Counted from the first letter of the stretch, positions 17,498 through 41,584 are shown. The stretch is DNA of 64,000 nucleotides from Marsupella aquatica (GCA_973895155.1 OZ316899.1:10691135-10755134); one strand, 5' to 3'. Notes: a model not told the origin generated them from the sequence alone. Program-made: numbers and translations.

Positions 17498-17929
17498 ATG
17501 ACTCCCCAAAACTTTACCAAAACTCAGTCAAGAAGGTGTGACTAGCATGACACCAACCACCTTGGAGTTGCTGTTTCATGAAGGTCTCAAAAAGGATGGA
17601 TTTCTTCTAATGGGGTAAAGTAAATTAGGCTGGTCTATATCCTTCTTCTAATTAATGTTTCCCCATAATTGTGGTCATTTGTCTATGCGAAGGGGTGATT
17701 TGTGAAAAAATAATTCTTACATTTTAGAATTGTATGGAAAGTGTCACTATCAATTATACAACTCCTTGCATCATCTAGTGATATGGGTTGGGTTTATGAT
17801 GGATCATATGGATCTCTGGGAGGGCTTCTTCTTGTGTGTACGCTTCCAAGCATTCCTCATTCTCTAGGAATGTTATGTGAGACTCTTGTTTATATCAGCC
17901 TATTCATTAAAAGTGTATTATTATTTGAT

Positions 17930-18260
17930 TTATGTACATTTTGGCAGTGAAAAGTGTACTTTTGGGCTTGGAAAAGTGTACATTTGGCCAATGAAAAGTG
18001 TACATTTGGGGATAGAAAAGTTTACAATTGGCCTAAAGAGTGTACATTTGGGCAATGAAAAGTGTAAATTTGAACATCAAAATAGATACATTTGGCTTTA
18101 AAAGTGTACATTTGAGTACATTTGGCCTAGAAAGTGTACATTTGAGTGCAAAATGCATACATTTGGCTTAACAAGTGTACATTTAAGTGCATTTGGTCTA
18201 GAAAGTGTAACTTTTAGTGCAATAAAGTGTACATTTGGCCTAAAAAGTGTACATTTGCCT
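17930..18260. repeat. Array of the AAGTGTACATTT motif (~22-bp period)
   Basis: About a dozen copies. The same motif recurs in the same orientation at 36565-36680. Confidence 0.85.
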
Positions 18261-18508
18261 ACCAACTCTTATTATAATCATTTAAAAGAAAGGAATGAAT
18301 AGAAAAACATTTTTAATTATGTAGAAAAAGCAAACATTCATATTTATAATGATCAAAAGTTTAGAAAATGAGGAGATAATATCACATTAAAACTATTAGA
18401 ATAGTAAATCACTAGTACATAAATTACTATGTTTGAATGAGTGACTATCTTAGTTACATAAAAACTAGTAACTATCTATTTAATTATTATAGCTTCTAAC
18501 AACTAAGT

Positions 18509-21500
18509 CTACTTGTCCATACTTTGAAGATAATTTTGGACAGTTTGTAGAACATTTCGAGGGATCTTCAAACCTCTGCCCGCCATGTTTTCTTATTTCA
18601 TTCCAGATTTAAAACCATACATTGCAGAATTTGCATACTGCCAATGTTGAGTATTCTCACCAAACCCTGGATCTCGTTCCCATGTCTTAGTGGACATGAA
18701 ACAATTTAGATACCGCGCACTCTCAGTCACATCAAGTTTACTAGAGTGTTTAGGCCTCCACCATTCAACTGGGAACATTGGAGCGTACTGTCGAGGCAGA
18801 GAAGGGTTTGTTGAAGATGTAGTTGGGACTTCATGCTTTGGGTCCACCAAACCCAAAGCTCTCACCAACCAGAAATGACCTCCACCATTTTTATTCTCCC
18901 AGTCATCCTCGGGTCGAAGAAATACAAAGTTTCCTTCACAAATATCTTGTAAAGGAATCCATCGTCCTTGTTCTCTCTCAGCTCGAGATCCAACAAATGG
19001 TGCTGCTTGATCTTCCATCTCTTCCAAGACCTCATTTTGAAGAGCCGTCATCTCTGCATTCTCCTCATCTTCACTTGGAGGACCACTTTGTTCCGGTTGG
19101 TTGACCTTGTAACCAGTGTCGTGGTTAGTCTTAGGCCAAAATCTGTTTTCCAAGGGAAATTGAGTACTTCCCTCCCCTTCTAGTGCGAGCCCATTTGTCA
19201 ACAACTCCACAATTCTCTCCCAATATTTCACAAGAGGAAATCTTTCCTTATATGCTATAGATGTCTCATCAGTGCAACTCCTTCTCAAAAAATCAAGGTA
19301 CTTGTTAAGAAATGGGATAATCTCTTCAGATTTTTTGTGTATCTCTCCAATGGATTTAGCTAAGGGCTCTCCACTTGGTAAAAGAAGAGAATTTGTTGTC
19401 AGATCTGTTGCCCAAATGCACCTTCCACCAACTGGAGCCCAAGCTTGCTTTACATGGGACTTATACTGAAATATTGGTACATTATCTCTCATAGAGAAAA
19501 GAAATGATACAGGTTTTGAGTGACCTTGAATATCTTTCACCTTGAAAGTTTGAAGATATTCTTTGTAAGATGCAACTTCTTGTATCAATCTGGGAACTGG
19601 ATGAATGCTCTCGCATTCCCATACCTCTGCCATAAGAGCAAGGAGGGTTGCAACTTCTTTGTGCTGAACTTGATATGATACCTTTGAAAAGAGTGCATCA
19701 ACATCTTCATGCGTATGACCAACCATTAGAAAAGACATTTGAACAGTTTCAAATACTCCTCTACTCACAAGCTCGCTACAAAATGCCATGACAGTCTGGT
19801 TTTTGTTGTCCTTTGCTGAATTATCCATCTGCAATGTTAGGTGCCTTGGCAAGGGCTTGAACGATGGACTGCCTTGCTCTCCTTGCATGTCTTCTCCATC
19901 ATCCTCATCTTGCTGGTTTGGGACGGTCTCAGTCCGACTCTCAGCTCCATCTTCAGAACCAATATACCTATTCACCGGTATATTCTTTGGTTCCAAATAA
20001 CCCGTCAAAAATGCTTCAAAGTCAAGTAGGGCTTGAAAGAAAGGTCTGTGAGGTTCCCAATGAAGGCCATCCAACATGTCACCTGTCTTGTCTCCATTGT
20101 ACTCTTCAAGGTCTCGAAGACACTTAGCCAAGGATGTCACCGTGAAATTGGCATCTCCTGGCCAAAGGCCAGTGACACTAAAGTGTGCATAAACTCTTGG
20201 ATCCCTCCCGTGGGTCAACATCCCTGTGAGAGCAATAGGTAGCGGCATTCCATGACCCGAAAGAGATTTAGGAGTACTAACCATTTTTGGAATCCATGTC
20301 TTTGCTTGATCCATCTTGTCGTGAATAATGCAAAGATATTCTCCTGGGTGTTGTTTGGCCATCACTCGCTGAGCGTAGTAAACATATCTACGTGACATTT
20401 GCTCACGAAGATGTTGCGCTCGTTTTTCTTCAATTTCAGCACGTTCTTTTTTCCTTCTTTCTCGCATCAAACTGTCTTTGTATTCACAACAAAGAGTACA
20501 CTTGGCAAATGCACCATCTTTATGAAAACTGAAGTTTGCAAATGAGTTACTCCAGATCTTGTAGAGAGTATTCTCTGTGACAGGAGGAAGCCCTTCTTCC
20601 TTCATCTTTGTTCTCACATCTTCCAGAATCTCTAGCTTTTTGTAACACGCCGGAAGACGGTACTCAATAGAGTCTGTCCCATGTGCCCCTCCATAAGGCA
20701 TATGAGGCATGGGCTCTGCATTTTGAGTCAAAAAAGCCTCCAACAGAGCTCGTGCATGCAAGGTATTTGCCCTTGTTTTCATCAAGCCCGTATTGCCATG
20801 GAACCCAATTTTGCAACCCTCCACATATCTCCTTTTGTAATCATAATATTTGGTGTGGCTAAAACTGTGGATAATTGCAAATGCATGTCTGCATACGACC
20901 ATACCCTTAAGAACATGGTGTCCCTTATCACGAACATCATCCTCTCTATAGTGAAAGAGGTTGAAAATGTGTGACGTTTTTGACTCGCTTGACATCCCAT
21001 GAAATTCCATCCTAATATCTTCGATGTTTTCCCTTGGCATAATGAGACAACATTTTTGCTTGCAACAATTTTCTCTTTTCACGTCATCAATTGACGCCTC
21101 TGTTGTTTTTGAAATTGCCTTGGTTTCCAACAACCTCCTCTTCTTTTCATTTGGATCTACTTGATTCCTCTTGTTAAAATTGTAGGGCCTTGAACGCAGT
21201 ACTCCTCTATCACTTACATCCGCATTGAGTTCATCCCTATCCATTGAGTCCATCCTTTCAGAACCTTCCACCAAAATGTCTGACAAAAATTTTCCATTTG
21301 CAACTAGTTTTGTTGAATCAATCCGCCATCGAATCAAACTCACTACTCCCTTGTGGATGTTGGGAAAGTATTGTGCTGCCACGACATCTTTCACAGCAAT
21401 CCCAACATGGTCATCACCAAGAATTTCATCATCAACTGCCGCCGTCACTTGAGGGACAGTGATCGTTCCCGTGGCAACCATTTTGGTTCGATCCAAACCA

Positions 21501-22285
21501 GTGTAGAGTTCAACCAACTCTGACATCCAGTTTGCCCGATGAAAATAGTCACACTTAGTGTCTGTGGTGTTTGCCGAACAAGACTGTGAAACAAAATCCG
21601 CCTTGTCCTTCTGCTTCTTAGAGGAAGATTTGTTGCTCCCATCGATGTCAACATTCCATACTTTATTGTGGACGTCAGCCACATCCCATAGAACCCAGGA
21701 GCCCTTTGCCTCTTCAATTGTTGCAGCTCCACCATGTGCATAAGGTAAAGTCTTACTACCATGAATCGCATCTGTGATTTTTACACTAACCCGAGACTCA
21801 CCGAGTAATATGTTATGACATCTCTCCATTGGATCAGTCTTGAAAACAACTCCAAAGGCCACACAATGGCCAGAGATAAACATTTCAACCTCATCACCTG
21901 GCCTTAGGGTGGTCGAAGCATCCTCCTGTACATTTGCAGAATTATGGATGTTGTTATCTTTTCGAGTCGAACAACTACCAATACTGATGCGTTTTTGAGT
22001 AATCTTATCCGCAGATCGATATGCACATGACATATCCCAAATGACACATGAGTCAATGGCATCATGAAGATTTTCCGCCCTAGGCATTGGAAAAGGGAGC
22101 TTCCTGGTCTCACCAAAGGCCTTCTCAATGAGAACCCCAATTCGATTCTCTCCCAGCACAATATTTTGAACACTCTCTTGCGGATCTGTCTTTTGAACTG
22201 TCCCATTTCCAACGTCGTAACCATCCATTGTCAAGGTCACATCATCGCCCCTAGAAAACCTTTGAGACATCCTTTTCCTATTATC
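18509..22285 (-). CDS. DUF7869 / Sola-like DDD transposase with three N-terminal En/Spm Tnp1 (Transposase_23)-like repeats; main exon
   Basis: 1232-aa ORF with CTLC zinc motif, IIHDKMDQ, LQMDNSAKDNKN and SFLMVGHTHEDVDALFS. Splice acceptor TTTTCAGTGTGCAG at 22286. TAA at 18593 is followed by 27 more open codons to TAG at 18509, so it may be premature. Confidence 0.75.
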
Positions 22286-22335
22286 CTGCACACTGAAAAA
22301 AATGGATTAAAACCAAAGTCATGCAAATTTTGATT

Positions 22336-23125
22336 CAGACTGCGATCCTCAAAGTCTGGATTTGGACTACGATCCTTCAATTCCGGATTTGGACCGGGAC
22401 CATCCAAGTCCGGATTTGGACTACGATCCTCTGATTCTGGATTTGGACTAGGACCATCCGAGTCCGGATTTTGACCGGGACCATCCAAGTCCGGATTTGG
22501 ACTGCAATCCTCCGAGTCTAGATTTGGACTATGATCCTCCGATTATGGATTTGGACTGGGACCATCCGAGTCCGGATTTGGACTGGAATCCTCCGAGTCT
22601 GGATTTGGAGTACGATCCTCCGATTCTGGATTTGGACTGGGACCATCCTAGTCTGGATTTGGACTGGGACCATCCTAGTCCAAAGTTGGACTAGGACCAT
22701 CCCAATCCAAACTTGGACTCGGACCATCCCAATCCAAACTAGGACTTGGACCATCCAAGTCCAAACTTGGACTCGGACCATCCCAATCCAAAGTTGGACT
22801 CGCACCATCCTAATCCAAACTTGGACTCGGACCATCCCAATCCAAAGTTGGACTTGAACCATCCTAATCCAAACTTGGACTCGGACCATCCCAATCCAAA
22901 CTAGGACTTGGACCATCCAAGTCCAAACTTGGACTCGGACCATCCCAATCCAAACTAGGACTTGGACCATCCAAGTTTAAACTTGGACTCGGACCATCCC
23001 AATCCGAACTTGGACTCAGATGATCCTAATCCAAACATGGACTCGGATGATCCCAATCCAAAGTTGGACTCGGATGATCCTAGTCCACATCCGAATCCAA
23101 ACTTGGACTAGGACCATCCTAGACC
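22336..23125. repeat. 30-bp tandem array (~26 units) of a hairpin/palindrome, upstream of (probably intronic to) the transposase exon
   Basis: Core TTGGACTnGGA-CCA-TCCnAnTCCAA, perfect in some units (TTGGACTAGGACCATCCTAG at ~23104). Confidence 0.9.
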
Positions 23126-23799
23126 AACCCATAATGTAACGGGAGATAAACTTCAAACATTTTAAGCTAAGAAAATTCCAAATTTAGGAAGACTCCGTAT
23201 TTTACGGATCTCCCTATATGGTGTAGCCTAAAGTTTGCGTGGTCTTAAGGTAGACCCTAATGTCTACATACAGTTTCATGAAATAATGAAACCTAGCCTT
23301 ATATTTGAATGCATTAACCTTATACTCACCTTAGTATTAAGATCTGGTAGAATATGAATATCACATCCAAGGGGGATACATTGTTGTCTGTAGATTGGTA
23401 AAAACTTTCCCAAAACCCTGAAATACAAGCTATATGCCACTAAATCTTGGGAGTAAAAAACAAACTGAACCCTAAACCACACATGTCTGTAAAAGATAAA
23501 CTGAGAGGACCCCAAAAGTCAAGAAGCTGGCTAAGCTGACCCATTGAAGGTAAGTGGCTCAATACATAACACTTTAAGAGAAACTCCGGATTACATGGAG
23601 CTTAGATTTGGGAAACTAGAACAAGAATGAGCTCCGAAGTGGGCGTCTCCCGAAATATACCCTTTGCTCGAGTCGGCTCAAACGGAAATCGCGTGAAGAT
23701 AAGGGTTGAGTACCCCTTCACCTTAGCTTGCGGCACACCTTATCTTCACGAGCTTAATTGCACGGGGACTACCGTGCAAGGCTGTTAGGTAGGCAGGAC

Positions 23800-24181
23800 A
23801 TCAAGGAAGGAGGCCCGTATGCAGGGTGCGGGCAACGGGCCGTACGCAGGAGCAGGCCGTACGCACTATCAGGCCGTACGTAGGAGAAGGAGGCAACCGG
23901 CCGTACGCAGGCCGGGGTGAGGCAGGAGGGGGTAAAGGGACAAAGAGGTCCAGCCAGGACCTCATTCTCATTCTCACTCTTTCGCTCCTCACTCTGCTCA
24001 CGCTCTCCACTCTCCGCCTCCGCTCTCTACTCTTTGCCTCCACTCGCTCGCTCTCCTCGCTCTTTGCTCTCCGCTCTCTCTCCGCCTCCGCCTGCTTCCG
24101 CCTCCACCTCCATTCTTTTTCATTGCCCTAAATCGGACGCCTGCTAAGAAGCCACGTGTCACTCTGCCACATGTCAGAAAG
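23800..24181. promoter_or_regulatory. Putative divergent promoter region between the transposase and the ParB-MTase-like gene
   Basis: GC-rich block with 4 copies of GGCCGTACG (23838-23907), a CT-rich Y-patch (23960-24120) and a G-box GCCACGTGTC at 24151. Confidence 0.45.
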
Positions 24182-24344
24182 ATGGAAGCGAATCGCGTCC
24201 TTGTGAAGTCCTCCGTGGAAGCAACAGAGGAGTTTGACCTCTCCTCTATGAGCGATAGTGTAGAACTGGCACTTGAAGACTCCAGACAATTTCAATCAAG
24301 AATCCCTAGTAAGTATCCATCACCTATCCTCCCTAAGTCTTAGA

Positions 24345-24685
24345 GGACTGGGACCATCCGAGTCCAAAGTTGGACTCGGATGATCCCAATCCAAACTTGG
24401 ACTCGGACCATCCCAATCCGAACTTGGACTCAGATGATCCTAATCCAAACATGGACTCGGATGATCCCAATCCAAAGTTGGACTCGGATGATCCCAGTCC
24501 AAAGTTGGACTCGGATGATCCCAATCCGAACTTGGACTCAGATGATCCTAATTCAAACGTGGACTCGGATGATCCCAATCCAAACTTGGACTCGGATGAT
24601 CCTAATCCATCCAGGAGATTGAATCTCGATTGTAGGAGCAAGTCTAAAACCATCTCAAGTTGGACTAGGACCATCCTAATCCAAC
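24345..24685. repeat. 30-bp palindrome array in intron 1 (24309-24747)
   Basis: About 10 units of TTGGACTCGGATGATCCCAATCCAAAC, the same family as 22336-23125. Confidence 0.9.
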
Positions 24686-26533
24686 AAGAGTTATTCAAAT
24701 GTTTTAAACTTAATAAGTCTAACATGGATGACGTTTTTATGATGCAGGGAGCGATCTTGTTGGTTTCAAACCCGCGATTGCACCGACCGACTGCCGGGAC
24801 GGATTCTTACTAGATGAGAGATCCCCAGGCTTCCGATGGGGGCTTGAGTTCTCAAGAACCCCGCTTAATAATGAAGTGCCATCAAGCACGATTGAACCTA
24901 TTTTGACCTTAAAGTCCAGAGCAAATGATAGCCTGACTTTGGTTTGCGGACCTGTGGTCTCTGTTGGCATTGGAGGGAGAGGGATGAATTCGGTCATTCT
25001 GGAGATGCACGATAGGCCATGCTGGGTTAAAGTTAACCTTATGTCAAAGGCATACTCCTCAGAATTCAATGTCGAATGGCACGCAAGTGGTGAATTGAGC
25101 GTTTTGTCAATGGGATTTTTTCCAAAGACATATGACACAAAGAAGTTGGTCATCGGGGTAACTGGTATGCTTCCAGTCGACATTATGTATGGGTTTCAAT
25201 ATTTGAAACTCAACATGATGAAGCACCAAGGCAATTTCTCTTTTGCAACTACTTGGACGTTAAGCAATTTACTTGAGAAAGTTGGATTGTTATCGTTGGA
25301 GTCAGAGGAGCCTGGTGTTTTAATTGATAAGGATGTTGCATTTGATCCCAACTTTGATTTAGTCAAAGCAAAGCAATGGATAGAATCTTTGTCAAAGACG
25401 AGAAACCTTCCAACGGTGAATACAAACCCTGTGCCCGAGAAGGCGCCAGAGAAAGCTCCAGAACCTACAACAGAGACCGCGGGAACTACAGCAGCAACCT
25501 CTCAAAGAGCAGTGGGAAAACAAAAACAAAGCCAAAGGAAACCTCCGGTTGAAAAGAAACTTCCAGTTGAGAAGCCGGTTGAGAAGCCGAGTACGAGAAG
25601 CCGAGTTCAGAAGCCAGTTGAGAAGCCGAGTACGAGAAGCCAAGTTGAGAAGCCAGTTGAGAAGAAACGTCCGGTTGAGAAGCCAAGTGCAAGTGAAAAG
25701 AGGCCAAGACAAAAGAAGAAACAGAAAATTGACAATGCCATCATGGATGACACTACAGAAAACCTGACAGTGCATTCACAAGATATGGACGAGCAGTTGG
25801 ACGCTCCTGAGGAGAAGAAGGTCTTAGAAGGTAATGAGGTACTGCAACAAATGGAGCAATATTATACGTTTGGGATCAATTCGATATTTTCTATTCCCGT
25901 AGAGAGTATTTTCCCTGCGTCGGCAAGACTCTGTTACAGAATGTTGAATGCAGACCATGTAAAGGAGGTGGCCAATTCCATGATAAGAAATCCGGGGCAT
26001 GAACCACACATAGCAGACTTGATTCCTTACACTACAAAACATAGAAACCTAATGCAATATGACAACACGGAATCAGATAGGAGGGACTTTGTAGCAGCCG
26101 TGAAAAAGGGGGAGGTTCAATTCCTTGCCATTAGCGGTCAACATTCGGCCAGAGCAGCCAGATGGATTCGAGAATGGGCAAACAAGGATGCCAAGCTAAC
26201 AGCATTGGCAAAAAAGCTGGAATTTCGAAAGTCAAGAATATTATCTCATCGAACACCATCGTCAATATTAGTTGAGCATTCAATGCGATCTAATGCTATC
26301 AATAGCACGATGGTGTTTCAGTCATGCTTCAAAGATACAGTCGTTCATGCTAGGCGGCAATTTGTGGAATGTGGAAAACCTAGCCGGCCAAAACATGGGG
26401 ACAACAAAACAAACGCTCAAGACAATCAAAAATTTCAGGTACGAAGTGTTACTGCTTGATTGGTACAATACCGTAGACTCTCCATGTGTGATTACAATTG
26501 AGATGGTAGTCTTTGACCACAAAGCTTCAAGTT

Positions 26534-26880
26534 TGCTTTGGATTGAGATGGTCCGAGTCCAAATGGATACATTCACATTCAGTAGAATATTTCCACTGAT
26601 ATCGTCTAGTTTTGTGTTGGACTGGGATGGTCCCAGTCTAAATGGATTCATGCACATTCAATAGACTATTTCCACTGATATTGTCTAGTTTTGTGTTGGA
26701 CTGGGATGGTCCCAGTCCAAATGGATTCATGCACATTCAGTAGAATATTTCTCCACTGATACCGTCTAGTTTTGTTTTGGATTGGGATGGTCCTAGTCCA
26801 AACTAAATCATGCACATTCAATATAATATTTCCACTGATACTGTCTAGTTCTGTGTTGGACTGGGATGGTCTGAGTCCGC
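26534..26880. repeat. ~80-bp tandem repeat (4-5 units) in intron 2, each unit carrying the same palindrome in reverse orientation
   Basis: TTGGACTGGGATGGTCCCAGTCCAA core. CCACTGAT anchors at 26593, 26672, 26753 and 26832. Confidence 0.9.
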
Positions 26881-29532
26881 ACCTGAGTGCTTTCAAACAA
26901 TTGAGTTATGGAGAACTAACAGACTTTCCTTTGCAATTGTAGGATTGGTTGGCTCTTGCAAGAATGACCATGGGAAGGAAAGATTGTCGTAATGTCTACT
27001 GGTTACTATTTGCCGACAATGCTCTTTTTGATTTATGGAGTTTGGTATGCCAATTGTGGTTGGATGGGAAACTTCCCGATGGAGCTGGTGTAGAAGGAAA
27101 TGAGAAGTCTGAAAAAGCAATTACTGTTGCCATGTTTCGTTGTTTTGATGGTGAGTTGATCTCACAACGAGACATCACAAGAATACTGACGCGGGTGAAG
27201 TCAGGAAAGGTATTGCTAAAGAAAGATGCCTCTAATAAATCAGACATGCCATCTATAGAGGAGTTGGCCAAAGATGTGAAGATCGTGCGGAAACTCAAGT
27301 CCCTTATTGAAGACTACTATTGCACCAAGGATGCGGTGAATTTCCCGACAAATACTAATTGGGGGAAAGTAGTTGAGGTTCTTCCTACGCTAGCAATTGA
27401 TTCAGAGTTCACCAGGTGTCGAAGAGCCGCTGGCGAGGTCTATCTTGCCAACCTTTTAAAGCCAAATCATACGCGGGAGAGCGCAATCTTGCCGACGGCA
27501 TTGGTATTCCGCCTAGATGATATATACTGCCAGAGATTTGGCGGAGGATCACGTTCTCGGACCCTACCATGGGTTACATTTTTTAGCGACAATCTCATGA
27601 AGACCATTGATCCAGAGTCATTGCAAGAAGCTCCTCCGACCTGCCCTCTTGCCATTGTTGATTTTAGCCGGCTTCCGCAAAAATAGTGGACTGAAGCAGA
27701 GATTCTTGTTCTCTTTGAATACATTGTGGAGCTTCCACAAAATCCCACGATTGTGGTGACGATAACAGTTCATCCTGGACAACTTGCACTGAATGTCCAT
27801 GGTGCCCTTCGTAAATTGGGACAAGAGAAAGCTTTGACCATTCACATTGAGTATGGGAGTTATTCCCGAGATGATCAACCGCACCCTCATGACTCATGTT
27901 GGGGTGGAGGGATTGAAGAAGTTATCTTTGCAGGGATTTCTCGAGATGAAGACGTCAATTGGAATGAAGTTTTCAAGCCCAACTATCCAAAGCCAAAATT
28001 CTTGTATACTTCAAAGGATGTTGATTATGAAGTATGAAAGATCGACAAGGGAAAGGGGAAAGCTAAGGAATCAGATGAGGGGACACAAAACGACGACCTA
28101 AAAGTGGTTTTGGACCCGGAAGAGGCCGTCAAGATTATGAATATGGCCCCTCGATTTGAGACAGTTGGTAGTCGCGGAGGATGGGTTAATCCTCATGCCA
28201 AACCCACGCGGATGATCCGAAGAATTATTGAATCCTTATCAGAACCGGGAGATTTGGTTCTAGATTTTTTCTCCGGTGGCCAAGTCATGAAGACATCATT
28301 TTTTTGCGATAGGGAATGCTTTGTTTATTGTGACTCTCAGTCCGAGAGGCATTTTGTGGAAGCTTTTGCTTCCTACCTTTGCGAGAGAGTTCCCTCACTT
28401 AAAGCCCATTGTGAATCACTTGCTGAAAATTCTTGACAATGGGCTACCACTATTGCGGCTGTAGCTGTCGCTGTTGAATCCGACGGTTCTGAGTCTGAAG
28501 ATGTTGCTGACAAAGTGGCTAAAGGCGTAGAGGCATCAGAGGAGGCATATGTCAAGAATTTGGATGACCGTGTTGGTCAAGGTGAGCCTTACGATGTAGA
28601 TGATGATATTGGACTTGCACCAAACCGTTCATCTGGTTTAGATGACATCCCTCCGGGGCCCAATGAAGTTCAAGTTGATGATAACTTGGACAAGGATGAT
28701 CCCAATCCAACAACGCCGGGAGGACAGATGGAGCAACTGGAAGGAGCAAGGGTTGATATGTTTGATCATCTTTCTTCAACCAATCTGATCAACGAAGGCG
28801 CAACGAGGCTTGGAGATTCAAATGAAGCTGAAACTAACGAATTGACTCGTGGGGAAGCCGGCGGATTGCCTGACATTCCCATCAATCCAGGAGGAAATGC
28901 ATCAACGGCTGCTGACAACCAGGCAGGTGCTTCAACTTGTCCTGACACACTCTTTTCAGCTTCTGATGACAAATTGGTGTTCGTTCGTTCACACTCGAGG
29001 AGTCCTGTTGTCCTTCCGTTCTCAAAAAAGAAAGGGAATAGAGTTGGATCAACTGGATGGAGGTCATTGGAACGCGACGCACGATGTTACGTGTGGAAAA
29101 GTGGGCCAAATCGAGGCCAAGAAATATCATTGGAAGCTGCTCCTTCAATTCTCAATAAGGAGGAGTATAAGAGGGGAGAATTGGGGTTCATAACTCCTGT
29201 TTGGACTTCTCCTTATTGGGTAGAACAAAGTACTTCAGATGTCAATTTTGAAATCCAACAGGAGCTTGGTGCTGACATGATTATTGATGAATACGGATCT
29301 CTTATTTCGGAATGAAATTCAGCCTTTGACTTTCTATTTATTCATATCAATCTAAAATACTTCTCGGTCTCACAGAATGGGCTCACCAATTAAAGTCTCC
29401 ATATCCGTCTACACATTGTGAGGCTTCTAAAAACGGTATGTAGGTTAATTTTCGTTTTTGTCAGCCATTGTGTTGTATTTTTGGACTGAGACAATCCTAA
29501 TCCAAAGTTCACTTTTGGTCTTTTCTCTGAGA

Positions 29533-30566
29533 ATGGTGTTTGGTGCACTTGCAGAATCGAGACCTGGTCCCGTCAAGCGGAAGTTGTTGATTTTGGACCT
29601 TAATAAAATACTTTGGGATTCTATTGAATTCCAAAGCAAGGGCACATCCAGGAATATTGTCACCTCAAGTGGAGTGCATTGGGATAGAAAAAATGGTATT
29701 AGTCGCATGTATACAGAACGACCAGGGCTCCATGAGTTTCTAAAGTTGGTTTTTGACAGATTTGACGTTGCAATTTGGACTTGTGCTGGGGTAGAACGAA
29801 CAGTGAAAATGCTGAACATGATGTTCACTGTTGAGGAGCGGTTGAAACTTAAGTTTGTATTCACACAGGTGGAAGCCTTTGACACAGGCATTCAAAGGCG
29901 TGACATTACAAACGGAAAGGCAAATGTGCTACTGAAGGATTTTCAGGTGGTATGGAATGCATTTGGAAATCTATATGATGAAACCAACACCCTCCTTGTC
30001 GATGACTCCCCCCTTAAGGCATTTGCCAACCCAGACATGACTGGATTATTTCCAGTGCCCTACACGCATGCCAATCGTGGAGATAATTTTCTTCTAGCAA
30101 TTCTTTGGCCATGTCTTGAGAAACTATCACATGCAAGTGACATTCGATGTTATCTTCTTCTCAACTCTCCAAAGTGGTCTCTTTTGCACATGAAGAGAGA
30201 CAAGGCAAAAAATGAGATTACTTATGATCAACTTAGCAAGAGATTTGCAGCAAAAATTTGGAAGTCACAGTTTACACATAGTGTGTTGGACCTCAACAGT
30301 AATGAGATCCCTTGGAACGTCCTGAGGTGGAACTTGACAATGCACTTGTCAACTCACTTGCTAAATCATTTTTAGGAAAGGACTATTCAGGTCCATATAG
30401 AGAAAATCCCAGACACTTTTTGCGGGGGATTATAGCCATTAGGAACAACACCACCAGATTTCAACTCCTTGAAAATAAAGGGAGTTGCAACCGTGACAAT
30501 AGGGTAGATAGGAAAGGAGACAGGGGCACATGCTCAAATACACATTGTAGGGAGCACTTGGTTTAG
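29533..30566 (+). CDS. FCP1/SCP (NIF) HAD phosphatase-like protein, probable frameshift near 30320
   Basis: Motifs RKLLILDLNKIL, RPGLHEFL..VFDRFDVAIWT and NTLLVDDSPLKAFANP. The C-terminus appears to continue in the 30312-30566 frame. Confidence 0.75.
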
Positions 30567-30651
30567 ATATTTAATTGACTTGTGTTAAGCCCCTTGGATA
30601 GTACTAGAAATATGTTCGTATTCAATGTAAATTTGCAGATAATTGTATAAA

Positions 30652-33600
30652 TGTTATAACCCATAATATGACTTAACCCTAGTATAGGATAGGTTAACAT
30701 TAACCCAACCATGTTAACCCTTCTGGACTATATAAGTCCTTGGCATAATGGAAGTGAGTGGGGATTATTGACTACTATCATCTTGTGTATTCATAACACG
30801 TTATCAGCGCGACTTGCTCAATTACATTTTTTTTACATGTGCTCCCTCCCCAAAATCTGACAACTCAATAGATCGAGGTCCACACAAAGAAAACAACACA
30901 ATGTTGTGTGTTTTTTGCTCCAATGGCGAGAATAACCGCCTAACTACCTCCCGAGAATAGAGAAAACAAGCTTATGATCGAAGAACAAAGAACTGGCCAT
31001 AGAGCGTCGAGCCTAATCACGAGCGAAGATTCTCAACCTTGAACGAAGGAGACAACGCGACGAGACGCAAAAAACAAAATAAAAGACATTGGCGAAAACT
31101 GAAAACTTTGAGGACCGCACACAAGGACATACGAACGAACTCCATCGGGGACAATTTGGATGCGATTCAAGGGGCAGATGAGTCCCGTGCCTTGAGCGAA
31201 AGGATCGCTATCGTTTCTCTTTCTTTTGGTTAACTTGATCCATCACAACAGCCGATCAATCGGGCGGGACAAGGCGAAAGTCATAGGCATTTGATACAAA
31301 GGAACACCATATATTTATAAGGCCCAAAATCAGGCGAAATAGACATGGCGACATTGGAGAAGTTACATTTCCCAGCCCTACTAGTAGACGGCAGCAACTA
31401 CTTGACATGGGCCGTAGATGCGGAAACATACTTCGCATCGTTGGAGCTTGAAGATACATTAATCACAGACCAAAATCTGACTCTACAACAGAAGGCCAAG
31501 GCCGTGTTCCTTTTGCGCCAGCACTTGGTTCCCTCACTAAAATCCCAATACATGAACGAAGTCAATCCACGACTCCTGTGGGACAAGTTAAAGGCCCGAT
31601 TCGACCATATGCGCGAAATATGGCTTCCTGAGGCTCGCCGCGATTGGTACAACCTACGAGTGATGGATCATACTTCCATTGCTAACTACAACAGCGCTCT
31701 ATTTAAAATTACCTCTCAACTAGAACTCTGCGGCCATCCAGTCCCAGACGCAGATAAGATCGACAAGACACTGAGTACATTCCCCGAATCAAACATTGCA
31801 CTCGGTACACAGTACCGAAATATGCAATTCACCACATATTCAGATCTTATCGCACATTTACTTGTAGAAGAGAAGCAACAGGTGGTCGCCATGCAAAACG
31901 CCCAAAAAAGACCTGCGGGAACAGAACCACCACCACACAAACCAGAGATAAATTACTATCAGCGAGATAACATGGGACGAGGCCGACCAAGAGGCAGAGG
32001 CGGATACCAAGGCAGAGGTAGAAACCAATCCTACAGAGGTCGAGGATATCGACAATCATACAACACAAGAGGCAGGGGAGTAGGCGGCAGAGGCAGGATG
32101 AGTGATAATGCATCGGACAACACCAAAGATGATAGGATGTGCTACCGATGCGGAAAAATAGGACACCTGAAGAAAAATTGTTGGGCATCGGACCAAACAG
32201 CCAGGAAACATACAGAATCAAGAGCTAGACTCAAACAAAACCCAGCAGGGAACTACATGGAGCTAGAAGAAGCAATAGCCACCTACAAAGACCCCGAACA
32301 ACCTCATGAAGTGGAGACCCACATAGTAACTCCAGCAAGAGGACCCTACACACTACAAGACCCCAATCTGGGCATAATTGACAGCGGTATGTCTCATACA
32401 ATACTAAAGGACAAGAAATATTTCCACTCAATTACCCCATCAGCCCGGCATATGACCACCATTTCAGGCACAAACCAGATTGAGGAGGGTAAAGGCACAG
32501 CCACGGTAATATTCCCAGGAGGCACTGCACTCGCCATCGAAGCAGCGATATTTGCCCCGCGAGCTACAAGGAACCTCATCAGCTTCCGAGACATAGTCGC
32601 AAATAAATATCAACTGCGCACAGTGAAAACAGACGAGGAAGATACCCTCCAAATCGTGGAGGTTACCGAACAAGGTATACATATTAAAGAAACCTTACCC
32701 CTTATACCACCAGGCCTCTACGCAACTTAAATTCAAGCTCACTATGTCACTGCAGACTTACCTGATATCACATACTTATGGCACTGTCGACTGGGACACC
32801 CCGGAGTAAATATGTACCGCAGAATTATTCATGACTCCCGTGGAATCCCCCAAGGAGTCAACCCATCAACAAAACAAAGGCAATGCCTGGCGTGCTCTCA
32901 GGGGAAGCTGATTACACGCCCACAAATACAGAAGACAATCTATGCCATCCCGAACTTCCTGGAACACCTGAACGCAGATGTATGCGGCCCGATCCACCCA
33001 CCAAGTGGACCGTTTAAGTATTTCCTGGCCATCATCGACTCTTCGACCAAATGGCTGCAAGTATCTCTACTCTCTACACGCAACTTGGTCTTCGCTAGGA
33101 TACTGGCCAACATTCTAAAGCTTAAAGCACAATTCCCAGAACATCCAATTCGGAAACTGAGAGTGGATGGTGCAGGGGAATTCACCTCAAAAGCATTCGA
33201 TGAGTTTTGCTGGGCAGCGGGCATTGACACTGAATACTCAGTCCCATATGTCCATTTCCAAAACGGAATGGCAGAATCCGTTATCAAGCGTATACAGATG
33301 ATAACCAGACCCCTGTTAATGAATTCAAAGTTACCCCTATCCACATGGGGACACGCAGTCCTCCATGCTGCCACACTGCTTCAATACAGACCATCGGCGT
33401 TCAACACAAAGACTCCACACCACTTAGCGTTCGGACTACCTCCAGACCTGTCACACCTGCGGGTATTTGGATGCAAAGTCATGGTCCCAATACTGGGACC
33501 CAAGCGTACAAAAATCGGACCTCAAAGACAAGAAGGAATCTACATCGGAAATGACTCATCCTCGATCATTCGCTACCTGGAACCGACAACAGCCGATGTG

Positions 33601-36392
33601 TTTAAGGCCAGACATACAGATTGTCATTTTTACGAAGACACTTTTCCCACCCTAAGCATAGACAAACAAATGACAGGGGACTTGCACCCACACAAGATCA
33701 ACTGGAACAGCAGAAACTTACTCAACCAGGACCCGAGGACGAAACAAACGGATGCAGAAGTTAGACGATTACTCCACCTCCACGAGATGCTGGATAAGAT
33801 CCCAGATGCATTTAATGATGCAACAAATGTTACAAAATCCCACAACGAGGCAACCAATGTACCAGCCAGAGTACAAATGAATACTCCTCCAGCAACAGTA
33901 GCTGCCCCTAAGGCGAAAAGAGGTAGGCCACCAGGATCACATGATACCCGACCCCGCCAAAGACGCCCCCATCAGGTAATTCCTGAAACTACTTTTCACT
34001 TCATTAATAATGAATCCGAGACACCAGACATATCGGGTAATGAGGAGATGTCAATTCAGTATAAGCATACAGGACAAATTTACACGAGACAAAACACTAC
34101 TGTCGACGAACAATTTGCTTACCATATAGCTCAAGAAATAACCAATGATACTTCGGACCCTTTAACAATCAAAGAAGCACAAACAAGGTCAGATTGGCCA
34201 CACTGGAAAGAGGCCATTGACACAGAAATGGATGCACTAATCCATCGACAAGTCTTCGGACCAGTCAAACAAGTTGATCCTAACAATGACTATACAGACA
34301 GCCGATTTACGTTCATTAAAAAGCGAAATGCAAAAGGTGATGTTATCAGATACAGAGCGCGGTTAGTAGCAAAAGGATACACCCAGATCCCAGGCAGGGA
34401 CTATGATCTAACATATTCACCAGTAATGGACGTGACGACATTCAGGTATTTAATTGCTTTCTCTCGCAAACACCAGTTATGCAATATCCTTATGGACGTA
34501 GTAATGGCATACCTATATGGAGTCTTAGACTCCGAAATTCATATGAAAGCACCAAAGGAATTACTCGAAAGAGTGGCAGAACACATTCAGGGGAAGCAAT
34601 ACCCGAACCTGAGCAAGGATATGAAGTCGGGAATTGACCAGATTATCCCTAATGATGATTGTAAAGGCCTTGTGTTGAGCAGTGGCAACACACAGAAAGC
34701 ACCACTCCAGTACCCCGGAAAACGAAGGACTGGACAGCAGGCATTTGCTGTGCAAGTATTGAAATCCATAAACGGCCTGAAACAAAGCGGCCGTATATGG
34801 TACCAGAAATTTAAAACCGAAATACAAGCACTCGGATTTATTACAGAAGACATAGCGCCCTGTATATTCATCAAAAGAGTAGACACAGAGTTCGTCGTGT
34901 TAGCGCTATATGTCGATGACATTAATCTCTTCGGTACACAACGACTATTACGACAAACAATCAACACAATGAAGGGCATTTTCGAGATGAAAGAACTGGG
35001 AGAACCGACTTACTGCCTCGGCCTTCAGTTCGATCACCTACAGACAGGCACATTCATTAGCCAGTCTACCTATACAAACAAAATCCTCCAACAATTCAAT
35101 ATGCAAAAGGCATACCCGGTATCAACACCAATGGAGCTGGGATCCTTAGACACTGCGAAGGACATGTTCAGGCAAAGACAGGACAACGAACCAATACTAG
35201 ATTCAGATAAGCCATACTTATCGGCTATCGGAGCCCTCCTTTACCTGGCCAACAACACCCGACAATACGCCACTGGAACGGCATAAAACGAGTATTCCGA
35301 TACCTCCAAGGAACAATTGACATGGGACTATTCTTCCCCAACGAAAGCGAGGATGAACTTACAGGATACGCGGACGCTGGATACCTCTCAGACCCCCAAG
35401 ATTCAAAGTCGCAGACAGGATACGTCTTCTTGCAGGGTAAAACCGCCATATCTTGGAGAAGCACGAAGCAGAGCCTAACCACAACGTCATCGAATCACGC
35501 CGAAGTAATTGCCCTCTATGAGGCATGCCGCGAAGCGATTTGGCTCCGTAGTATAATCACACATATACTCAAACAGACAGGAAAAACCTTACTCACAAAT
35601 CCAACCACCATCTACGAGGACAATAGGGCATGCGTCGACCAGATAGTTACAGGCTACATGAAGACCGATCGAACCAAGCACATAGACCCGAAATTTTTCT
35701 TTACGCATGAACACAGCGGAAAGCAAATACAAGTAAAGTGGATAAGCTCACAAGACAATTGCGCCGACCTCTTCACCAAGCCGCTACCAGCGACTACACA
35801 TCGAAAGCACGTCAGCGCCATTGGAATGCATCGTCTCTCCTCCCTAACCTCCTCGACTAACGACAACTCCCGACACGAACACACAGCCAACGCAAAATCG
35901 AAGTAGAACCTCGACAAACTACTAAATCATAGTATCTAACGAACAGTTTACAGAGAGACACATGTTCCCCCGTCATGAATACAATACTACCCCGACTAGA
36001 GTAACAAATAAACGCTTACTTACTCTTAGCCCACTGGCTTAGACAGTAATAGGCTACTTTTAGACTTAGAGCATACACATTAGAGACTTTCTGAATTAGG
36101 GACCACAAATTGTAATGATGGTAGTACTCTTCCTTGAGAGGAAAGCAGCAAGGTTTGATGAGGCTACATCATAAGTGACTCCCACTTTTAAACTAGGGTT
36201 AAATGTGTGGTTCCTTGACACCCCGTCCAAGTAACCAAGGGGAAGTGTTATAACCCATAATATGACTTAACCCTAGTATAGGATAGGTTAACATTAACCC
36301 AACCATGTTAACCCTTCTGGACTATATAAGTCCTTGGCATAATGGAAGTGAGTGGGGATTATTGACTACTATCATCTTGTGTATTCATAACA
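30652..36392 (+). mobile_element. Ty1/copia LTR retrotransposon, Bianca lineage, full length
   Basis: Identical 147-bp LTRs (30652-30798, 36246-36392), TSD ATAAA, Bianca-type PBS CGTTATCAGC and PPT AAGGGGAAG. Confidence 0.95.
31345..35906 (+). pseudogene. Copia gag-pol polyprotein (gag, CCHC, PR, IN, RT, RNase H), disrupted
   Basis: Motifs CYRCGKIGH, IIDSG, WHCRLGHPG, ADVCGP, YVDD and YADA. In-frame TAA at 32728 and a frameshifting deletion near 35260. Confidence 0.92.
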
Positions 36393-36564
36393 ATAAAGAT
36401 ATTTTATAATCTATTTGGAATGATGTTATTTTGTTCACAGAATATCTGGTCCTTAAATGGGGATGAAATAACTTTATAAGTTTTTATCCTCCATTTCTAT
36501 GTGAGTTATTAAATAATATAATATGTATTATTTATTAATATAATATTAATGTGATTTGGCCTAT

Positions 36565-36680
36565 AAAGTGTACATTTAGAGACACAAAAGTGTACATTTG
36601 GGTGTCTTGAAGTGTACATTTGGGGCCATGAAAGTGTACATTTCAAGACTCATTTGTGAACAAAAGAAAGTACACTTTTA
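36565..36680. repeat. Second AAGTGTACATTT array
   Basis: 4-5 copies of the motif found at 17930-18260. Confidence 0.8.
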
Positions 36681-38401
36681 ATGAATAGGTTGATTTATTT
36701 GTATTCTTAGTTCTTCTATCAAGGTCACTAAATGTGAGGATATTTTACATAACTTTTGTGGGTGACCCTTAGTGCCACACGTAAAGCATTCTATTGTATT
36801 GGAGTTCTTATCTTCTTGTTGCTTTTCTTCACTTTGTGTTTGGTTGCCCCCTTTTGTGTATATGGGTTTTCCATCTCGTCTCCGTCCTCCTCTGTTGGGC
36901 CTGAAATTGGTCCTGCCACCCGCACATCCTCTACCTCTCCCCCTGAAACCTTGGTATCTGTCTCCTCTAGAAGATGTCCCTCCTCTAGAAGATTGTCCTC
37001 CTCTGTTTTTATTAGGGCCTATGCATGGGGTCCATTTATTATTGGTAGGCATTCCAAAATTAGCCTTAGTATTGGGGACTGGGGGCAAAGTCCCTGGGGG
37101 GCGGGTTTTTGCATTCTTAGATTATGGTTGTTTATGCTTTTCAGCCAACAACATATGGGCTATCAACTCAGAATACTTTGTAAATTTCATATTTCTATAT
37201 TGGGCGGCAAGGATCATGTTAGTAGGGTGGACGGTGGATTTCAGTTTGTTCCTCATCAGCTACAGGTTGCCCGTAAAGGGCTAATTGGGATGTTATCCTA
37301 AATAGTTCACTATTATAGTTGGCAATAGATGTGTGGTTTTGCACCCTCAAGTTAATCCAATCATGCTTTGCCTTTTGGAGGTGGATTGTCTTTTTGTGGT
37401 CATATCTGTCCTTCAAGTGCTCCCAAAGGATTCTTGGGTTATATTCATTTAATCATTGAATCTTGAGGGGGCCTCCTAAGTGGTGCCTCAGTAAGACTAA
37501 GGCCTGTGCTTTTTGTTGGAGTGTTGGACCAGCGTCTGTGATAATAGTATCTTGTAGGCCTGTGGATGCCAAATGGGCCTCCGCATCTAGAGACAAGGAG
37601 AGATCATTTTCTCCATCAATGGTGAGTGCCTGGAAATTCATCCATACTATTCATTTTGTAGAGTGAGGTTAACAATTGAAGTGCAAATTTTCTTTTGTAT
37701 TTCTAAAGAATTTTTTTGACTGTGTAAGCAATTGCACTTATCGAGAAAATTCCTTGGGACTTTGGTCGATTGTCACTCCAGTGGACTTTCTCTTTTTAAT
37801 CGACTGCTTTTGCAAATTGATTTGCTTATGTCTCTTGTCCGGCCGATTCCTTCCTTCTCCTGCGGAATTTCTTATCTCATTTTTCCTTTCTCCTGTAGGA
37901 TTGATTTCTTTCCCTAAATCGTTCCTCTCTCCGATTTCCTCCGATCTCTTTGATTTCTCTTTTTGTTCTTAGCTTCGATTTTGCTTTCTTTTCTCTCTGA
38001 TTTGATAGTTAGAAAGTGCATTGTCCAATTGCCTTAGGTTTTTCTCTCTGTTTTCAGAAATTACCACATGAAGATTCATCAATTCCTGTCCAGTAATCGC
38101 CTTCTGCAATCAAGTTCTCCTCAGCTACCCCTTCTCTTTAAATTTTGTTCATCAATGTGCTACGTTTATTTGATTTTATTTTTGGTTTTGGTGAGTCAAA
38201 GTGATGATATCGTGTTGGAATTCAAGGAAGCCATAGCTAGTTAGGATACAAGAGATACAAAGTAGAATCTCCAATTGACATGGATTCAACCGCTCTCCTT
38301 GTATTATATATGTTATGGAACAAAGATAACCTGATCTTAACCAGAGTTAGACTAACCCTAGGTCAGATTCCTAACGTAGCTTTAATACTTGTATCATAAC
38401 A
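36678..38401 (-). mobile_element. Truncated Bianca-type copia remnant (5' LTR 38213-38401, PBS, degraded gag)
   Basis: The gag fragments NFQALTIDGEN..., DWINLRVQNHTSIANYNSELFRITSQL and CFTCGTKGH are homologous to the 31345 gag. The minus-strand LTR reads TGTT...AACA and is followed by CGATATCATCAC. Confidence 0.8.
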
Positions 38402-39548: not shown

Positions 39549-41584
39549 ATGTCACTACCAGCACATCCAGTGTTGACCTTGGGGAGAACATTTGAGAGTT
39601 GGAAAGACCTTAAGAAATTAATAGTAGATGAGGGTGTGTTGTCAGAGCGACTCCTGATCACCCACAAGAAGGACGAGTATAAGTGGAAGCTAAGATGTAA
39701 GCAGAGTAGCTGCCCATGGAGGTTGAGAGCTACGAAGAAATGCAAAATAGAGACGATTACAATCACACACACATACTTGCGGCACACTTGTGAGCGGGCT
39801 GACCATTACAAAGAGAAGAATGCACAGCAGTTCTGATAGGCTGGCTGACAAAATTATGGATCTCATTGTCAAGAACCGTCAAACTAGACCTTCGACCACA
39901 AGAGATACCGCTCAGGCCTGGGTGCACCCTGACATAAAATATCACACAGCCTATGCTGCAAAACAGAGAGCATTGAAGCGCCTAGATGGAGATGAAACAG
40001 ATTCATTTCACCTCATACCAGCACACTGTCACCATATCCTTGAGAGAGATCCCATGGCACTTGCCAAGTACAGTGCACCGGATGGCCATCTACACATGTT
40101 ATTTGTGTGTCCTTCAGCATCCAGGGATGCATTTCGCCATTGTAGACCCATGATAGCATTAGATGGGACACACACGAGATGCATGTACCCTAGCATTCTT
40201 TTGATTGCCACAACATTGGATGCTAATAACACAGTCTTATTGCTTGCATATTCTTGGGTGCCTTCAGAGAACAAGGCAAATTGGCTGGTGTTCCTCAATT
40301 TGTTAAAAGAAGCGATTCCAGATTTATCTCTTCCAGGAGTTGTTTTTATCTCGGATAGGGAAAAAGGCCTCACAGATGGGGTTCCAGAAGTATTTCCTTG
40401 TGGACATCCTGCTTACTGTACATGGCATCTTGGGGAGAACGTTCAAAAGCATTATGGCAAGGAAATGAGAAAGTTGTTTGACGCTCTGCCATATGCTGTC
40501 ACTCCAGCCAAATATCAACAGCGATTGAAGCACATTGAGGAGAAGAACAAAGCAGCCACTGAATACATTCGAAGGACAGCCAACCCAAAGTACTATTCTC
40601 GAGCATATTTCCCATCTAGAAGGTGAGTGCAATGACTTAGGGTTTGTAATTGAATTGTTGTTTGCTTAGCAATGATGTTATTTCAATTGTACATGGGATT
40701 GAACATTCCTTCAGACTGCTGCTTCAACTTGACAGATGTGAAACTAATGTTCTTGTAGATGGGGACATGAAACCTCACAGCAAGCAGAGAGCACAAATAG
40801 GGCACTAAAACCTCAACGGTAGGAGGTGACATTGAATATGTCATGCCAGATCTGGGATTACATGATGGTAAAGTTTTTTGAGAAGCGAGAGCTTGCTGAC
40901 AGTATTACAACTCCATTCCCACCTCACATTATGGAAGCACTCAATCAAGTGGAAGAGAAAGCAAGTCGTTTGATTGCACATCCTTCCCATGAAGCAGAGG
41001 TAAGAATCACTGATGATTGTAATAGGCAGTACATAGTGCATCTTCAGCCACCTTGGTCTTGCACTTGTGGTGATTTTCAGGATAAACTGTTGCCCTGTAT
41101 ACATGCCTGGTGAGCAATGACTCGACTGTGCCAACGTCACTATGATTTTGTGAGTCCCTACTATAGCACAGAGACATATAAAAAAACATACAAGTCCCAT
41201 CTGCCAGCTTTGATTAGAGTTGGGCTCCTCCCAGATCCACATTGTGGCCCTCCGCTGAAGAAAAGACGTAAAGGACGTCCGATAGAGAGAATTCGGACTC
41301 GCTTTGATGAGGAGGAGGTTTGTCGATTGCCACAAAAGTGTGGGGTTTGTGGAGTTCGAGGCCATGATCGCAGGAATTGTCCAAACCACAATGAGTTGCA
41401 AATGTCGGAAATTGGGGAAGAAGAAAGTGAATTGGAGGACATGGAGGAAGCTCATTGTGCTGCCAAAGAGGATCCTTGTCATACTGTACAAGGTTGGGGA
41501 TCACAGGAGAGCATGAGCATTGGAAGCTTTTCTCAATTGCTAGCAACCATGGATAGTGCACCATCCAGTGGTTCCCATCATTAG
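39549..41584 (+). pseudogene. MURA-like transposase (MuDR, MULE DDE, SWIM, zinc knuckle), disrupted
   Basis: Motifs CPWRLRA, RPMIALDGTH, FISDREKGL, YCTWHL, TSQQAESTN, CTCG..PCIH and CGVC..GHDRRNC. Intron 40623-40758, a frameshift near 39800, and stops. Confidence 0.9.

Follow-up and report, generated by a model that had tools for sequence, protein, structure and literature searches.

A 64-kb stretch of the Marsupella aquatica genome (64,000 nucleotides; GCA_973895155.1 OZ316899.1:10691135-10755134), referred to here as the window and numbered from its first letter, contains a cut-and-paste DNA transposon that extends from 17894 to 36694 and measures 13.06 kb once a nested copia retrotransposon is subtracted. 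The element carries a transposase gene on the minus strand, a divergent, spliced gene on the plus strand (gene 2) whose product is modelled as a fusion of ParB-like and DNA methylase-like folds, and a NIF/FCP1-like gene of the HAD fold, also on the plus strand. An original prediction made from the DNA alone had placed a single mobile unit at 17930-36680, consisting of a Sola-like, DDD-type transposase open reading frame (ORF) of 1232 amino acids, a divergent spliced ParB-like/methyltransferase-like gene and a NIF-type HAD gene, all sharing an array of a 25-bp palindrome and bracketed by an array of a 12-bp motif. Each of these components is present, well beyond what chance would give, and together they form one element; the predicted span needed correction, in that the true ends lie at 17894 and 36694 and the segment 30652-36392 is a separate, nested copia element.

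The boundaries are defined by terminal inverted repeats (TIRs) and target site duplications (TSDs). An identical TTAT adjoins each terminus (17890-17893 on the left, 36695-36698 on the right), and inverted-repeat detection combined with a comparison of the ends places the left TIR, 5'-ATCAGCCTATTCATTAAAAGTGTA..., at 17894-17927 on the plus strand and the right TIR at 36661-36694 on the minus strand. The inverted repeat as detected pairs 17891-17927 with 36661-36697 (37 nt, 84% complementary); 25 of the 30 outermost nucleotides match between the left and right termini, and the TIRs are approximately 34 nt long. The related element of Calypogeia fissa (L009) has TIRs that start with ATCACAG and are identical at 29 of 30 positions, together with a perfect 4-bp TSD, AGAG, and an element of Riccia (L005, 334-16001) is flanked by a perfect CTAA when the same terminus definition is applied. 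All three of the three complete elements, including the window copy, thus have a perfect 4-bp TSD, which excludes chance. Every element found, whether in the window, Riccia or Calypogeia, has the terminus ...GAT and carries the terminal motif TATTCA(T/G)TAAAA. Ends at 17890 and 36698, with TTGT as the TSD, were tried and dropped, since the Calypogeia element set the terminus at ATCA.../...GAT and thereby the TSD at TTAT; under the first end model the Riccia element L005 had appeared to be without a TSD. The 8 bp that flank the termini read TTGT-TTAT on the left (17886-17893) and TTAT-TTGT on the right (36695-36702), a symmetry past the TSD that may reflect a target preference or chance.

Inside the TIRs lie subterminal arrays with a period of approximately 22 bp, namely about 11 copies of the 12-bp motif AAGTGTACATTTGG on the left (17933-18261, plus strand) and four copies on the right (36565-36645, plus strand), in the same orientation at both ends. 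The motif has 16 matches in the window compared with 0.8 expected, 11 of them at 17952-18258, four at 36566-36645 and one stray. Comparable 22-bp-period arrays occur at the ends of three Riccia elements (L001, L002 and L005) and of the Calypogeia element, and the orientation is likewise the same at both ends in L005 and L009.

The transposase ORF occupies 18593-22291 on the minus strand (1232 codons); counted from the first Met, an uninterrupted coding sequence at 18593-22270 encodes 1225 amino acids and matches Pfam DUF7869 (E 4.6e-44). Homologues in liverworts and mosses align with it end to end, at 99% coverage. The probable catalytic motifs, all on the minus strand, are IIHDKMDQ (nt 20329-20306), LQMDNSAKDNKN (nt 19834-19799) and GHTHEDVD (nt 19720-19697); D658, D661, D823 and D863 are invariant among 15 aligned homologues, in which the invariant Asp residues lie within IIHDKMDQ, LQ(L/M)DNSAKDNKN and GHTHEDVD. 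A comparison by eye matches the Sola1 signature FDLxxxLxTP...SDNCxGQN(R/K)N...FxxxGH(T/S) to IIHDKMDQAKTWIP, LQMDNSAKDNKN and FLMVGHTHEDVD of the window protein. In the published RNase H-core alignment (supplement E.10), Sola1-1_AP reads FDLEKVLTTP / YSDNCGGQNRN / FLERGHTQS, to which the conserved pattern D..DNxxxxNKN..FLxxGHTxxD of the homologues corresponds, and the Sola2 and Sola3 rows of the same supplement match the window motifs more poorly, again as judged by eye (PMC3985635). A profile search of the transposase against PDB sequences and Pfam returned nothing informative besides DUF7869, a domain of which no mention was found in the literature. Bao, Jurka and Kapitonov are said to have described in 2009 that Sola elements generate a 4-bp TSD. 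The conserved motifs and the TSD length together make Sola1 the best assignment, and the enzyme is probably a Sola1-type, DDD transposase, which gives DUF7869 a probable superfamily placement. The assignment is also backed by the Sola1 element of the brown alga Ectocarpus, which likewise has a ParB+methylase gene on the opposite strand. At its N-terminus (residues ~15-330; window 21900-22270), the transposase contains three repeats of approximately 60 residues with the pattern GDxVxL...G.V...LG...V, and three homologues have weak matches to Pfam Transposase_23 (TNP1/En/Spm; E 0.05); these features hint at a domain in common with CACTA elements.

Gene 2 diverges from the transposase gene, and a long reading frame extends on the plus strand from 24732 to 29312. 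A putative exon 1, predicted from the DNA sequence, spans 24182-24308, with an ATG at 24182 and a GTAAGT donor at 24309. It is followed by intron 1 (24309-24747, GTAAGT..CAG), which is in phase 1 on each side, so that the reading frame is kept. Exon 2 (24748-26438) encodes a conserved N-terminal domain to which no fold was assigned, a Lys-rich linker and the predicted ParB/Srx-fold domain. Intron 2 (26439-26942, GT..AG, 504 nt, phase 0) has a junction that agrees with Calypogeia gene model P0026, and exon 3 (26943-29315) encodes a helical middle region, the methylase-like domain and an acidic tail. Exon 3 of the window copy is interrupted by three in-frame stops, TAG at 27684, TGA at 28035 and TGA at 28434. 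Searches were carried out with single exons or stop-to-stop pieces, and hidden Markov models (HMMs) were built from Riccia proteins; the exon 3 pieces are colinear with the profile of Riccia proteins (E 4e-15, 2e-17 and 1e-34), and the stop at 27684 sits in a gap-free alignment with Riccia. The stops are thus nonsense mutations, and gene 2 of the window copy is a pseudogene; the transposase and NIF ORFs are both open. An in-frame TAG is found in the same 5-residue loop of the window copy (27684) and the Calypogeia element (11561), two codons apart, between the motif IV position of the methylase-like domain (DFSR) and a conserved Trp. The chance of such a coincidence is approximately 0.04, and the twin TAG codons could represent coincidence, a selected truncation, or readthrough that yields two isoforms.

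The part of the gene 2 protein encoded by exon 2 includes, according to structural modelling, a ParB/Srx fold. Homologues of exon 2 share 45-63% identity, and a profile search gathered 137 representatives. The domain (~25779-26438, plus strand), which includes the motif ISGQHSARAA at 26130-26159, was modelled with AlphaFold from 52 sequences at a predicted local distance difference test (pLDDT) score of 92.7 and a predicted template modelling (pTM) score of 0.87. The best PDB match of this model in a Foldseek search is Noc (E 9.9e-4, probability 1.00), followed by sulfiredoxin, PadC, ParB, KorB and SbnI; almost all of the best matches are ParB/Srx proteins, though with template modelling (TM) scores of only approximately 0.3. 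KorB is a ParB-family repressor, and ParB, KorB and Noc bind palindromic sites.

For the methylase-like part of exon 3, modelling indicates a beta-class amino-methylase-like fold, which brings up a self-marking explanation of gene 2: the ParB-like domain would target the palindromes, and the methylase would lay N4-methylcytosine (4mC) or N6-methyladenine (6mA) on the element's own DNA as an epigenetic label or shield. The match extends over the whole domain, although the model was built on an intact Riccia ORF (L001:2839-3741, minus strand; pLDDT 76) and not on the window copy. It has 44 PDB matches at E<=1e-3, with CcrM as the best (1.4e-8), and the matches listed are all beta-class or related N6/N4 DNA methylases, such as CcrM, M.RsrI, PvuII N4 and rotifer N4CMT. 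The window piece 28038-28433 exceeds the threshold of Pfam N6_N4_Mtase (PF01555; 31.1 bits compared with a cut-off of 26.7). The motif I region, HAKP...DFFSGG in the window (28188-28280, plus strand) and HxxKP...DFFSGG in general form, is conserved among approximately 41 sequences (D 39, F 41, S 39, G 38, G 36) and is preceded by HPxxKR/HAKP, in the beta-class order. The canonical S-adenosylmethionine (AdoMet) motif I is FxGxG, usually DPFxGSGTT; the family version is without the usual Pro and without the second Gly-x-Gly spacing. Also weighing against self-marking is the absence of the catalytic motif IV, (D/N/S)PP(Y/F/W), from every sequence examined: the position reads DFSR in the window (AIVDFSRLP, 27651-27677, plus strand) and Calypogeia, DLTH in at least 30 of approximately 35 Riccia sequences, and DLTS or DFAR in other lineages. 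The loop interrupted by TAG in both the window and Calypogeia copies is, moreover, the catalytic loop. The authors who described a Sola1 element in the brown alga Ectocarpus predict methylation by its protein (PMC12477816). Since DPPY is missing across the bryophyte family, self-methylation is unlikely, gene 2 is not classed as encoding an active methylase, and self-marking as a whole is given a rather low probability.

The third gene, an ORF at 29449-30375 on the plus strand with its first Met at 29533, matches Pfam NIF (PF03031) over the full profile (positions 1-160; 57.5 bits compared with a cut-off of 21.8, E 1.6e-15), and homologues lie downstream of gene 2 in L001, L005, L007, L008 and L009. 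Motif I reads LILDLNKIL (29587-29613, plus strand), and an LLVDDSP motif is present at 29992-30012 (plus strand). The second Asp of DxDx(T/V) is absent in seven out of seven NIF-like sequences aligned, with motif I being DLNKI in the window, DIEGL or DVEGL in Riccia, ELNKT in L007 and DINDL or DIKGL in moss; LLVDDSP is retained. Because canonical catalytic motifs are lost throughout the family, the methylase-like and phosphatase-like domains are, as far as these motifs indicate, most likely binding modules, for DNA or AdoMet in one case and for a phospho-protein, e.g. the C-terminal domain of RNA polymerase II, in the other, rather than enzymes.

The non-coding parts of the element are occupied by the palindrome TTGGACTGGGATGGTCCCAGTCCAA (25 bp), which at up to three mismatches has 23 matches compared with 0 expected, all within 22551-26801; at up to five mismatches there are 39 matches in the window, all within 22389-29481 and none outside the element. 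Array A (22338-23127; ~29 units with a 27-bp period) lies between the divergent genes and begins 68 bp upstream of the transposase ATG, array B (24343-24684) is contained in intron 1 of gene 2, and array C (26538-26878, 79-bp period) in intron 2. Long ORFs on both strands of arrays A and B, such as 22518-22970 (minus strand, 150 amino acids) and 24370-24813 (plus strand, 147 amino acids), are spurious and not genes; they arise because the 27-bp period of both arrays is a multiple of three. The palindrome takes three versions: TTGGACTGGGA-TGG-TCCCAGTCCAA in the window (~39 copies), CCTCGAGACCGTCTCGAGG in the Calypogeia element (27 copies), and GCTTCGGGACGCGTCCCGAAGC and variants in the Riccia elements L001, L002 and L005 (30-45 copies). 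Each version is confined to the interior of its element, and the three are unrelated in sequence; a core common to the genera (GGGAY..GTCCC) was proposed and rejected, as counts in the window give it no support. The window and Calypogeia palindromes occupy the same four sites, i.e. between the divergent genes, in intron 1, in intron 2 and ahead of the NIF gene. In the Calypogeia element, they are found at 6861-7353 between the transposase gene and gene 2, at 8787-8937 at the intron 1 equivalent and at 10661-10731 between the exons that border intron 2. The Riccia palindromes occupy intergenic and intronic stretches, and arrays lie directly upstream of the transposase gene at 9667-9935 in L001 and 9791-9928 in L002.

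Such arrays could also act as nucleic acids. They might form hairpins in introns or untranslated regions that serve RNA silencing as a source or a decoy, or that adjust splicing; or they might be satellites prone to cruciform formation or slippage that do no more than expand in the non-coding DNA of transposons, with the accessory proteins acting otherwise. This would suit the location of two of the three arrays in introns and of the third in a transcribed or promoter zone, the complete difference of the palindromes between genera whose proteins are similar, and the non-palindromic arrays of some Riccia lineages. Against it, what is found at the four sites in all three genera is palindromes rather than arbitrary repeats, the flanks contain none of them, and the gene alongside encodes a ParB-fold protein with palindrome-binding relatives in bacteria. 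An explanation by hairpins or satellites is for these reasons regarded as unlikely, if worth keeping in mind.

Beyond the window, which holds one copy, the order of transposase (minus strand), ParB/methylase-like gene (plus strand) and NIF gene (plus strand) was found in three loci of Riccia sorocarpa (L001 on CM100794, L002 on CM100795 and L005 on CM100796) and in the Calypogeia fissa locus L009. The proteins of these relatives are 21-64% identical to those of the window, and the flanking genes differ among the Riccia loci where they could be called (diphthamide synthase, a sugar transporter, RVT_1). The Riccia genome contains at least 76 distinct methylase-like gene models, dispersed over chromosome-scale contigs and 35-95% identical; five of them are annotated as fused with an FCP1 domain, which is explained by the constant adjacency of gene 2 and the NIF gene. 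The named homologues are bryophyte proteins only, mainly from Riccia and Calypogeia, and the rest are metagenome or Logan proteins. The segment 17894-36694 is one mobile unit; its closest relatives belong to liverworts, in which the set of three genes is conserved and present in multiple copies. The single copy visible in 64 kb might have been taken for an ordinary host gene cluster, single-copy and syntenic between species; the dispersed Riccia paralogues, the TSDs and TIRs of three elements and the internal-deletion derivatives L008 and L007 leave that explanation a negligible probability.

The derivatives differ in what they have retained. L007 is without a transposase gene. L008 (3132-7470, Riccia CM100796.1) is an internal-deletion copy in which a NIF gene and a normal terminus follow immediately on the 3' half of the transposase gene, with a second partial element adjoining; it reflects the turnover that is typical of a transposon family. 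In L006 (10001-22590, Riccia CM100797.1), the transposase gene has the ParB/methylase-like gene upstream of it on the same strand, and no NIF gene was detected; either this lineage has been rearranged or two elements abut here. In the moss Ceratodon purpureus (L004, 3873-5749, CM026428.1), two tandem NIF-like genes lie upstream of, and divergent from, a DUF7869 transposase gene. Searches with tblastn and HMMs found no ParB/methylase-like gene within 10 kb in this moss locus or in the Riccia locus L003, where the transposase gene stands by itself, and the NIF-like partner may be more widespread in bryophytes than the ParB/methylase gene.

Conservation of this kind also bears on whether the ParB/methylase-like and NIF-like genes are mere passengers, captured from the host or a bacterium (Pack-type capture) and without a role in the transposon. 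Giant transposons often carry captured genes, as noted in the Ectocarpus report, and the degenerate catalytic motifs and many pseudogene copies would be in keeping with such an origin. Nevertheless, gene order and orientation are kept in three genera even though the proteins of the elements are only 25-60% identical, and the non-canonical motifs DLTHP and DFFSGG are strongly conserved. The pairing of a transposase with a ParB-methylase protein recurs in a brown alga (PMC12477816), and NIF-like genes accompany the transposase in moss too. Passenger status is accordingly held to be very improbable.

The closest known system is Sola1-1_Ec32 of Ectocarpus, a giant Sola1 transposon of 21.5 kb that encodes on the opposite strand a protein of 1104 amino acids with ParB-like and DNA methyltransferase domains; its authors suggest that it belongs to a class of accessory proteins whose role is to bind the transposon encoding them and to modify it epigenetically (PMC12477816, Genome Biol 2025). 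The bryophyte element shares the arrangement of gene 2 (plus strand) opposite the transposase gene (minus strand), with ParB-like and methylase folds in one frame. It differs in host and in size, and also in its methylase: activity (4mC or 6mA) is predicted for the algal protein, while DPPY is lacking from the bryophyte family. Neither a NIF-like third gene nor palindrome arrays are reported in the text seen of that paper, and the accessory proteins were compared by description only. As the algal element was published earlier, in 2025, the transposon described here is not the new system that had been predicted but a new variant, from land plants, of an element type already described in algae.

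A second precedent is provided by the Plavaka elements (CACTA/CMC-type) of the red alga Bostrychia and their accessory genes PAG1-3 (bioRxiv 10.1101/2025.02.11.637652; Curr Biol 2025). These encode a protein with an N-terminal ParB-like domain, have tandem arrays of inverted repeats adjoining its gene and include a methylase-like domain in an accessory gene, and the authors advance the same hypothesis of binding to, or modification of, the element's own DNA. In contrast with the liverwort element, the transposase belongs to another superfamily, the ParB-like domain is fused to a 2-oxoglutarate-dependent oxygenase, and an N6-adenine methylase with a SET domain is part of a separate protein. The VANC proteins of Arabidopsis VANDAL elements, which are Mutator-like elements (MULEs), bind short motifs, tandemly repeated in the non-coding DNA of the family that encodes them (PMC5735166, PMC10398659). 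The VANDAL motifs diverge sharply between related elements, a conserved layout with sequence turnover like that seen here, and the mechanism may match; the transposase superfamily and the protein fold are unrelated, and VANC function is experimental where that of gene 2 is inferred.

In bacteria, the fusion of ParB with a beta-class methylase has been described as a prophage architecture (PMC4738411). Its two folds, and their order from N- to C-terminus, are those of gene 2, and ParB proteins have multi-copy palindromic sites. The liverwort gene, by contrast, is eukaryotic, spliced and transposon-borne, with SGQHS for the GERR-type motif, DPPY replaced and no match to Pfam ParBc. In eukaryotes, N4-cytosine methylases of bacterial origin are known from bdelloid rotifers (N4CMT) and from Marchantia (MpDN4MT1), the latter a liverwort precedent for a beta-class amino-methylase fold (bioRxiv 10.1101/2021.02.12.428880). 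Both are host genes, active and with their catalytic motifs intact, and the preprint describes neither a ParB domain nor a transposon context. No report was found in the literature of an occurrence in land plants, of a NIF-like partner or of the loss of the catalytic motifs.

The explanation that we favour overall, and consider probable though by a good distance not certain, is that of a Sola1-like unit whose ParB-like protein binds the element's own fast-evolving palindromes and thereby controls its own expression or chromatin, with the domains of dead enzymes serving to bind. The transposase would recognise the inverted and subterminal repeats and mobilise the element. The ParB-like protein, on the analogy of ParB, KorB and Noc, would bind the palindromes and coat the divergent promoter region and the gene bodies. 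Such a coat would give the protein control over transcription or chromatin within its own family alone, through autoregulation or through anti-silencing of the kind known from VANC and VANDAL elements. For the window copy, gene 2 function would have to be supplied in trans by other copies, because its own gene 2 has three in-frame stops. The original prediction that the accessory protein recognises or marks its own repeats survives in its first part, with which the element-specific, non-coding arrays agree; marking is doubtful given the replaced DPPY and the dead gene 2 copy. Of its fold assignments, the ParB/Srx and beta-class methylase folds were matched, and the profile search for the transposase yielded only DUF7869.

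Several observations weigh against this explanation. That the palindromes are targets of the ParB-like protein is an inference. The ParB-like domain has no sequence match to Pfam ParBc or to the PDB (Pfam up to E 10, phmmer, profile against PDB), so that its ParB/Srx relation is visible by fold search alone, and the GERR-type nucleotide-binding motif is replaced by SGQHS; ISGQHSARAA is, we presume, nearer to the GCHR motif type of sulfiredoxin and the GQHR type of DndB than to GERR. Although the ParB-like domain in the window is approximately 60% identical to that in Calypogeia, the palindromes of the two have no common sequence, which requires either that specificity changes fast or that the protein recognises shape instead of sequence. 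In Riccia, the tandem arrays at L006 and L007 contain no clear palindromes. In L003 and L004 the transposase occurs with no accessory gene detected, so that its lineage can evidently do without one. Finally, the Sola1 placement was made from motifs compared by eye and from the TSD.

On a bolder view, the accessory proteins might amount to a eukaryotic version of ParB/parS, put together from catalytically dead enzymes. The ParB-fold/pseudo-methylase protein would sit on co-evolving arrays, the pseudo-phosphatase may engage RNA polymerase II, and each lineage would gain a private form of transcription control or protection from silencing; the TAG codons might then give short (ParB-only) and long isoforms. 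We regard this more specific proposal as possible, while placing it well short of even chances.

Transposon-encoded proteins that combine ParB and DNA-modification domains were first described in 2025, in brown and red algae, and the liverwort elements now place the module in land plants. They add a linked NIF/FCP1-like gene, three palindrome versions at the same sites that amount to natural swaps of specificity, and a family-wide loss of methylase and phosphatase motifs, which argues for binding over DNA marking. Suitable systems in which to put these ideas to the test are Riccia, which has a telomere-to-telomere assembly and dozens of copies of the element, and its transformable relative Marchantia.

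The nested Ty1/copia retrotransposon occupies 30652-36392 on the plus strand, in the 3' part of the DNA transposon, and has gag, integrase, RVT_2 and RNase H domains, with gag and pol spread over three ORFs (31345-32730, 32812-35286 and 35322-35906). Its long terminal repeats (LTRs) are identical at 149 of 150 positions, have TG..CA ends and are flanked by a 5-bp TSD, ATAAA; it is a very young insertion. Downstream of the DNA transposon lie an apparently intact gene for a BBR/BPC GAGA-binding transcription factor (44469-45386, minus strand; Pfam GAGA_bind, 1.6e-70), by which the window is recognisable as land-plant DNA, and a fragment of a MULE transposase gene (39790-40626, plus strand).

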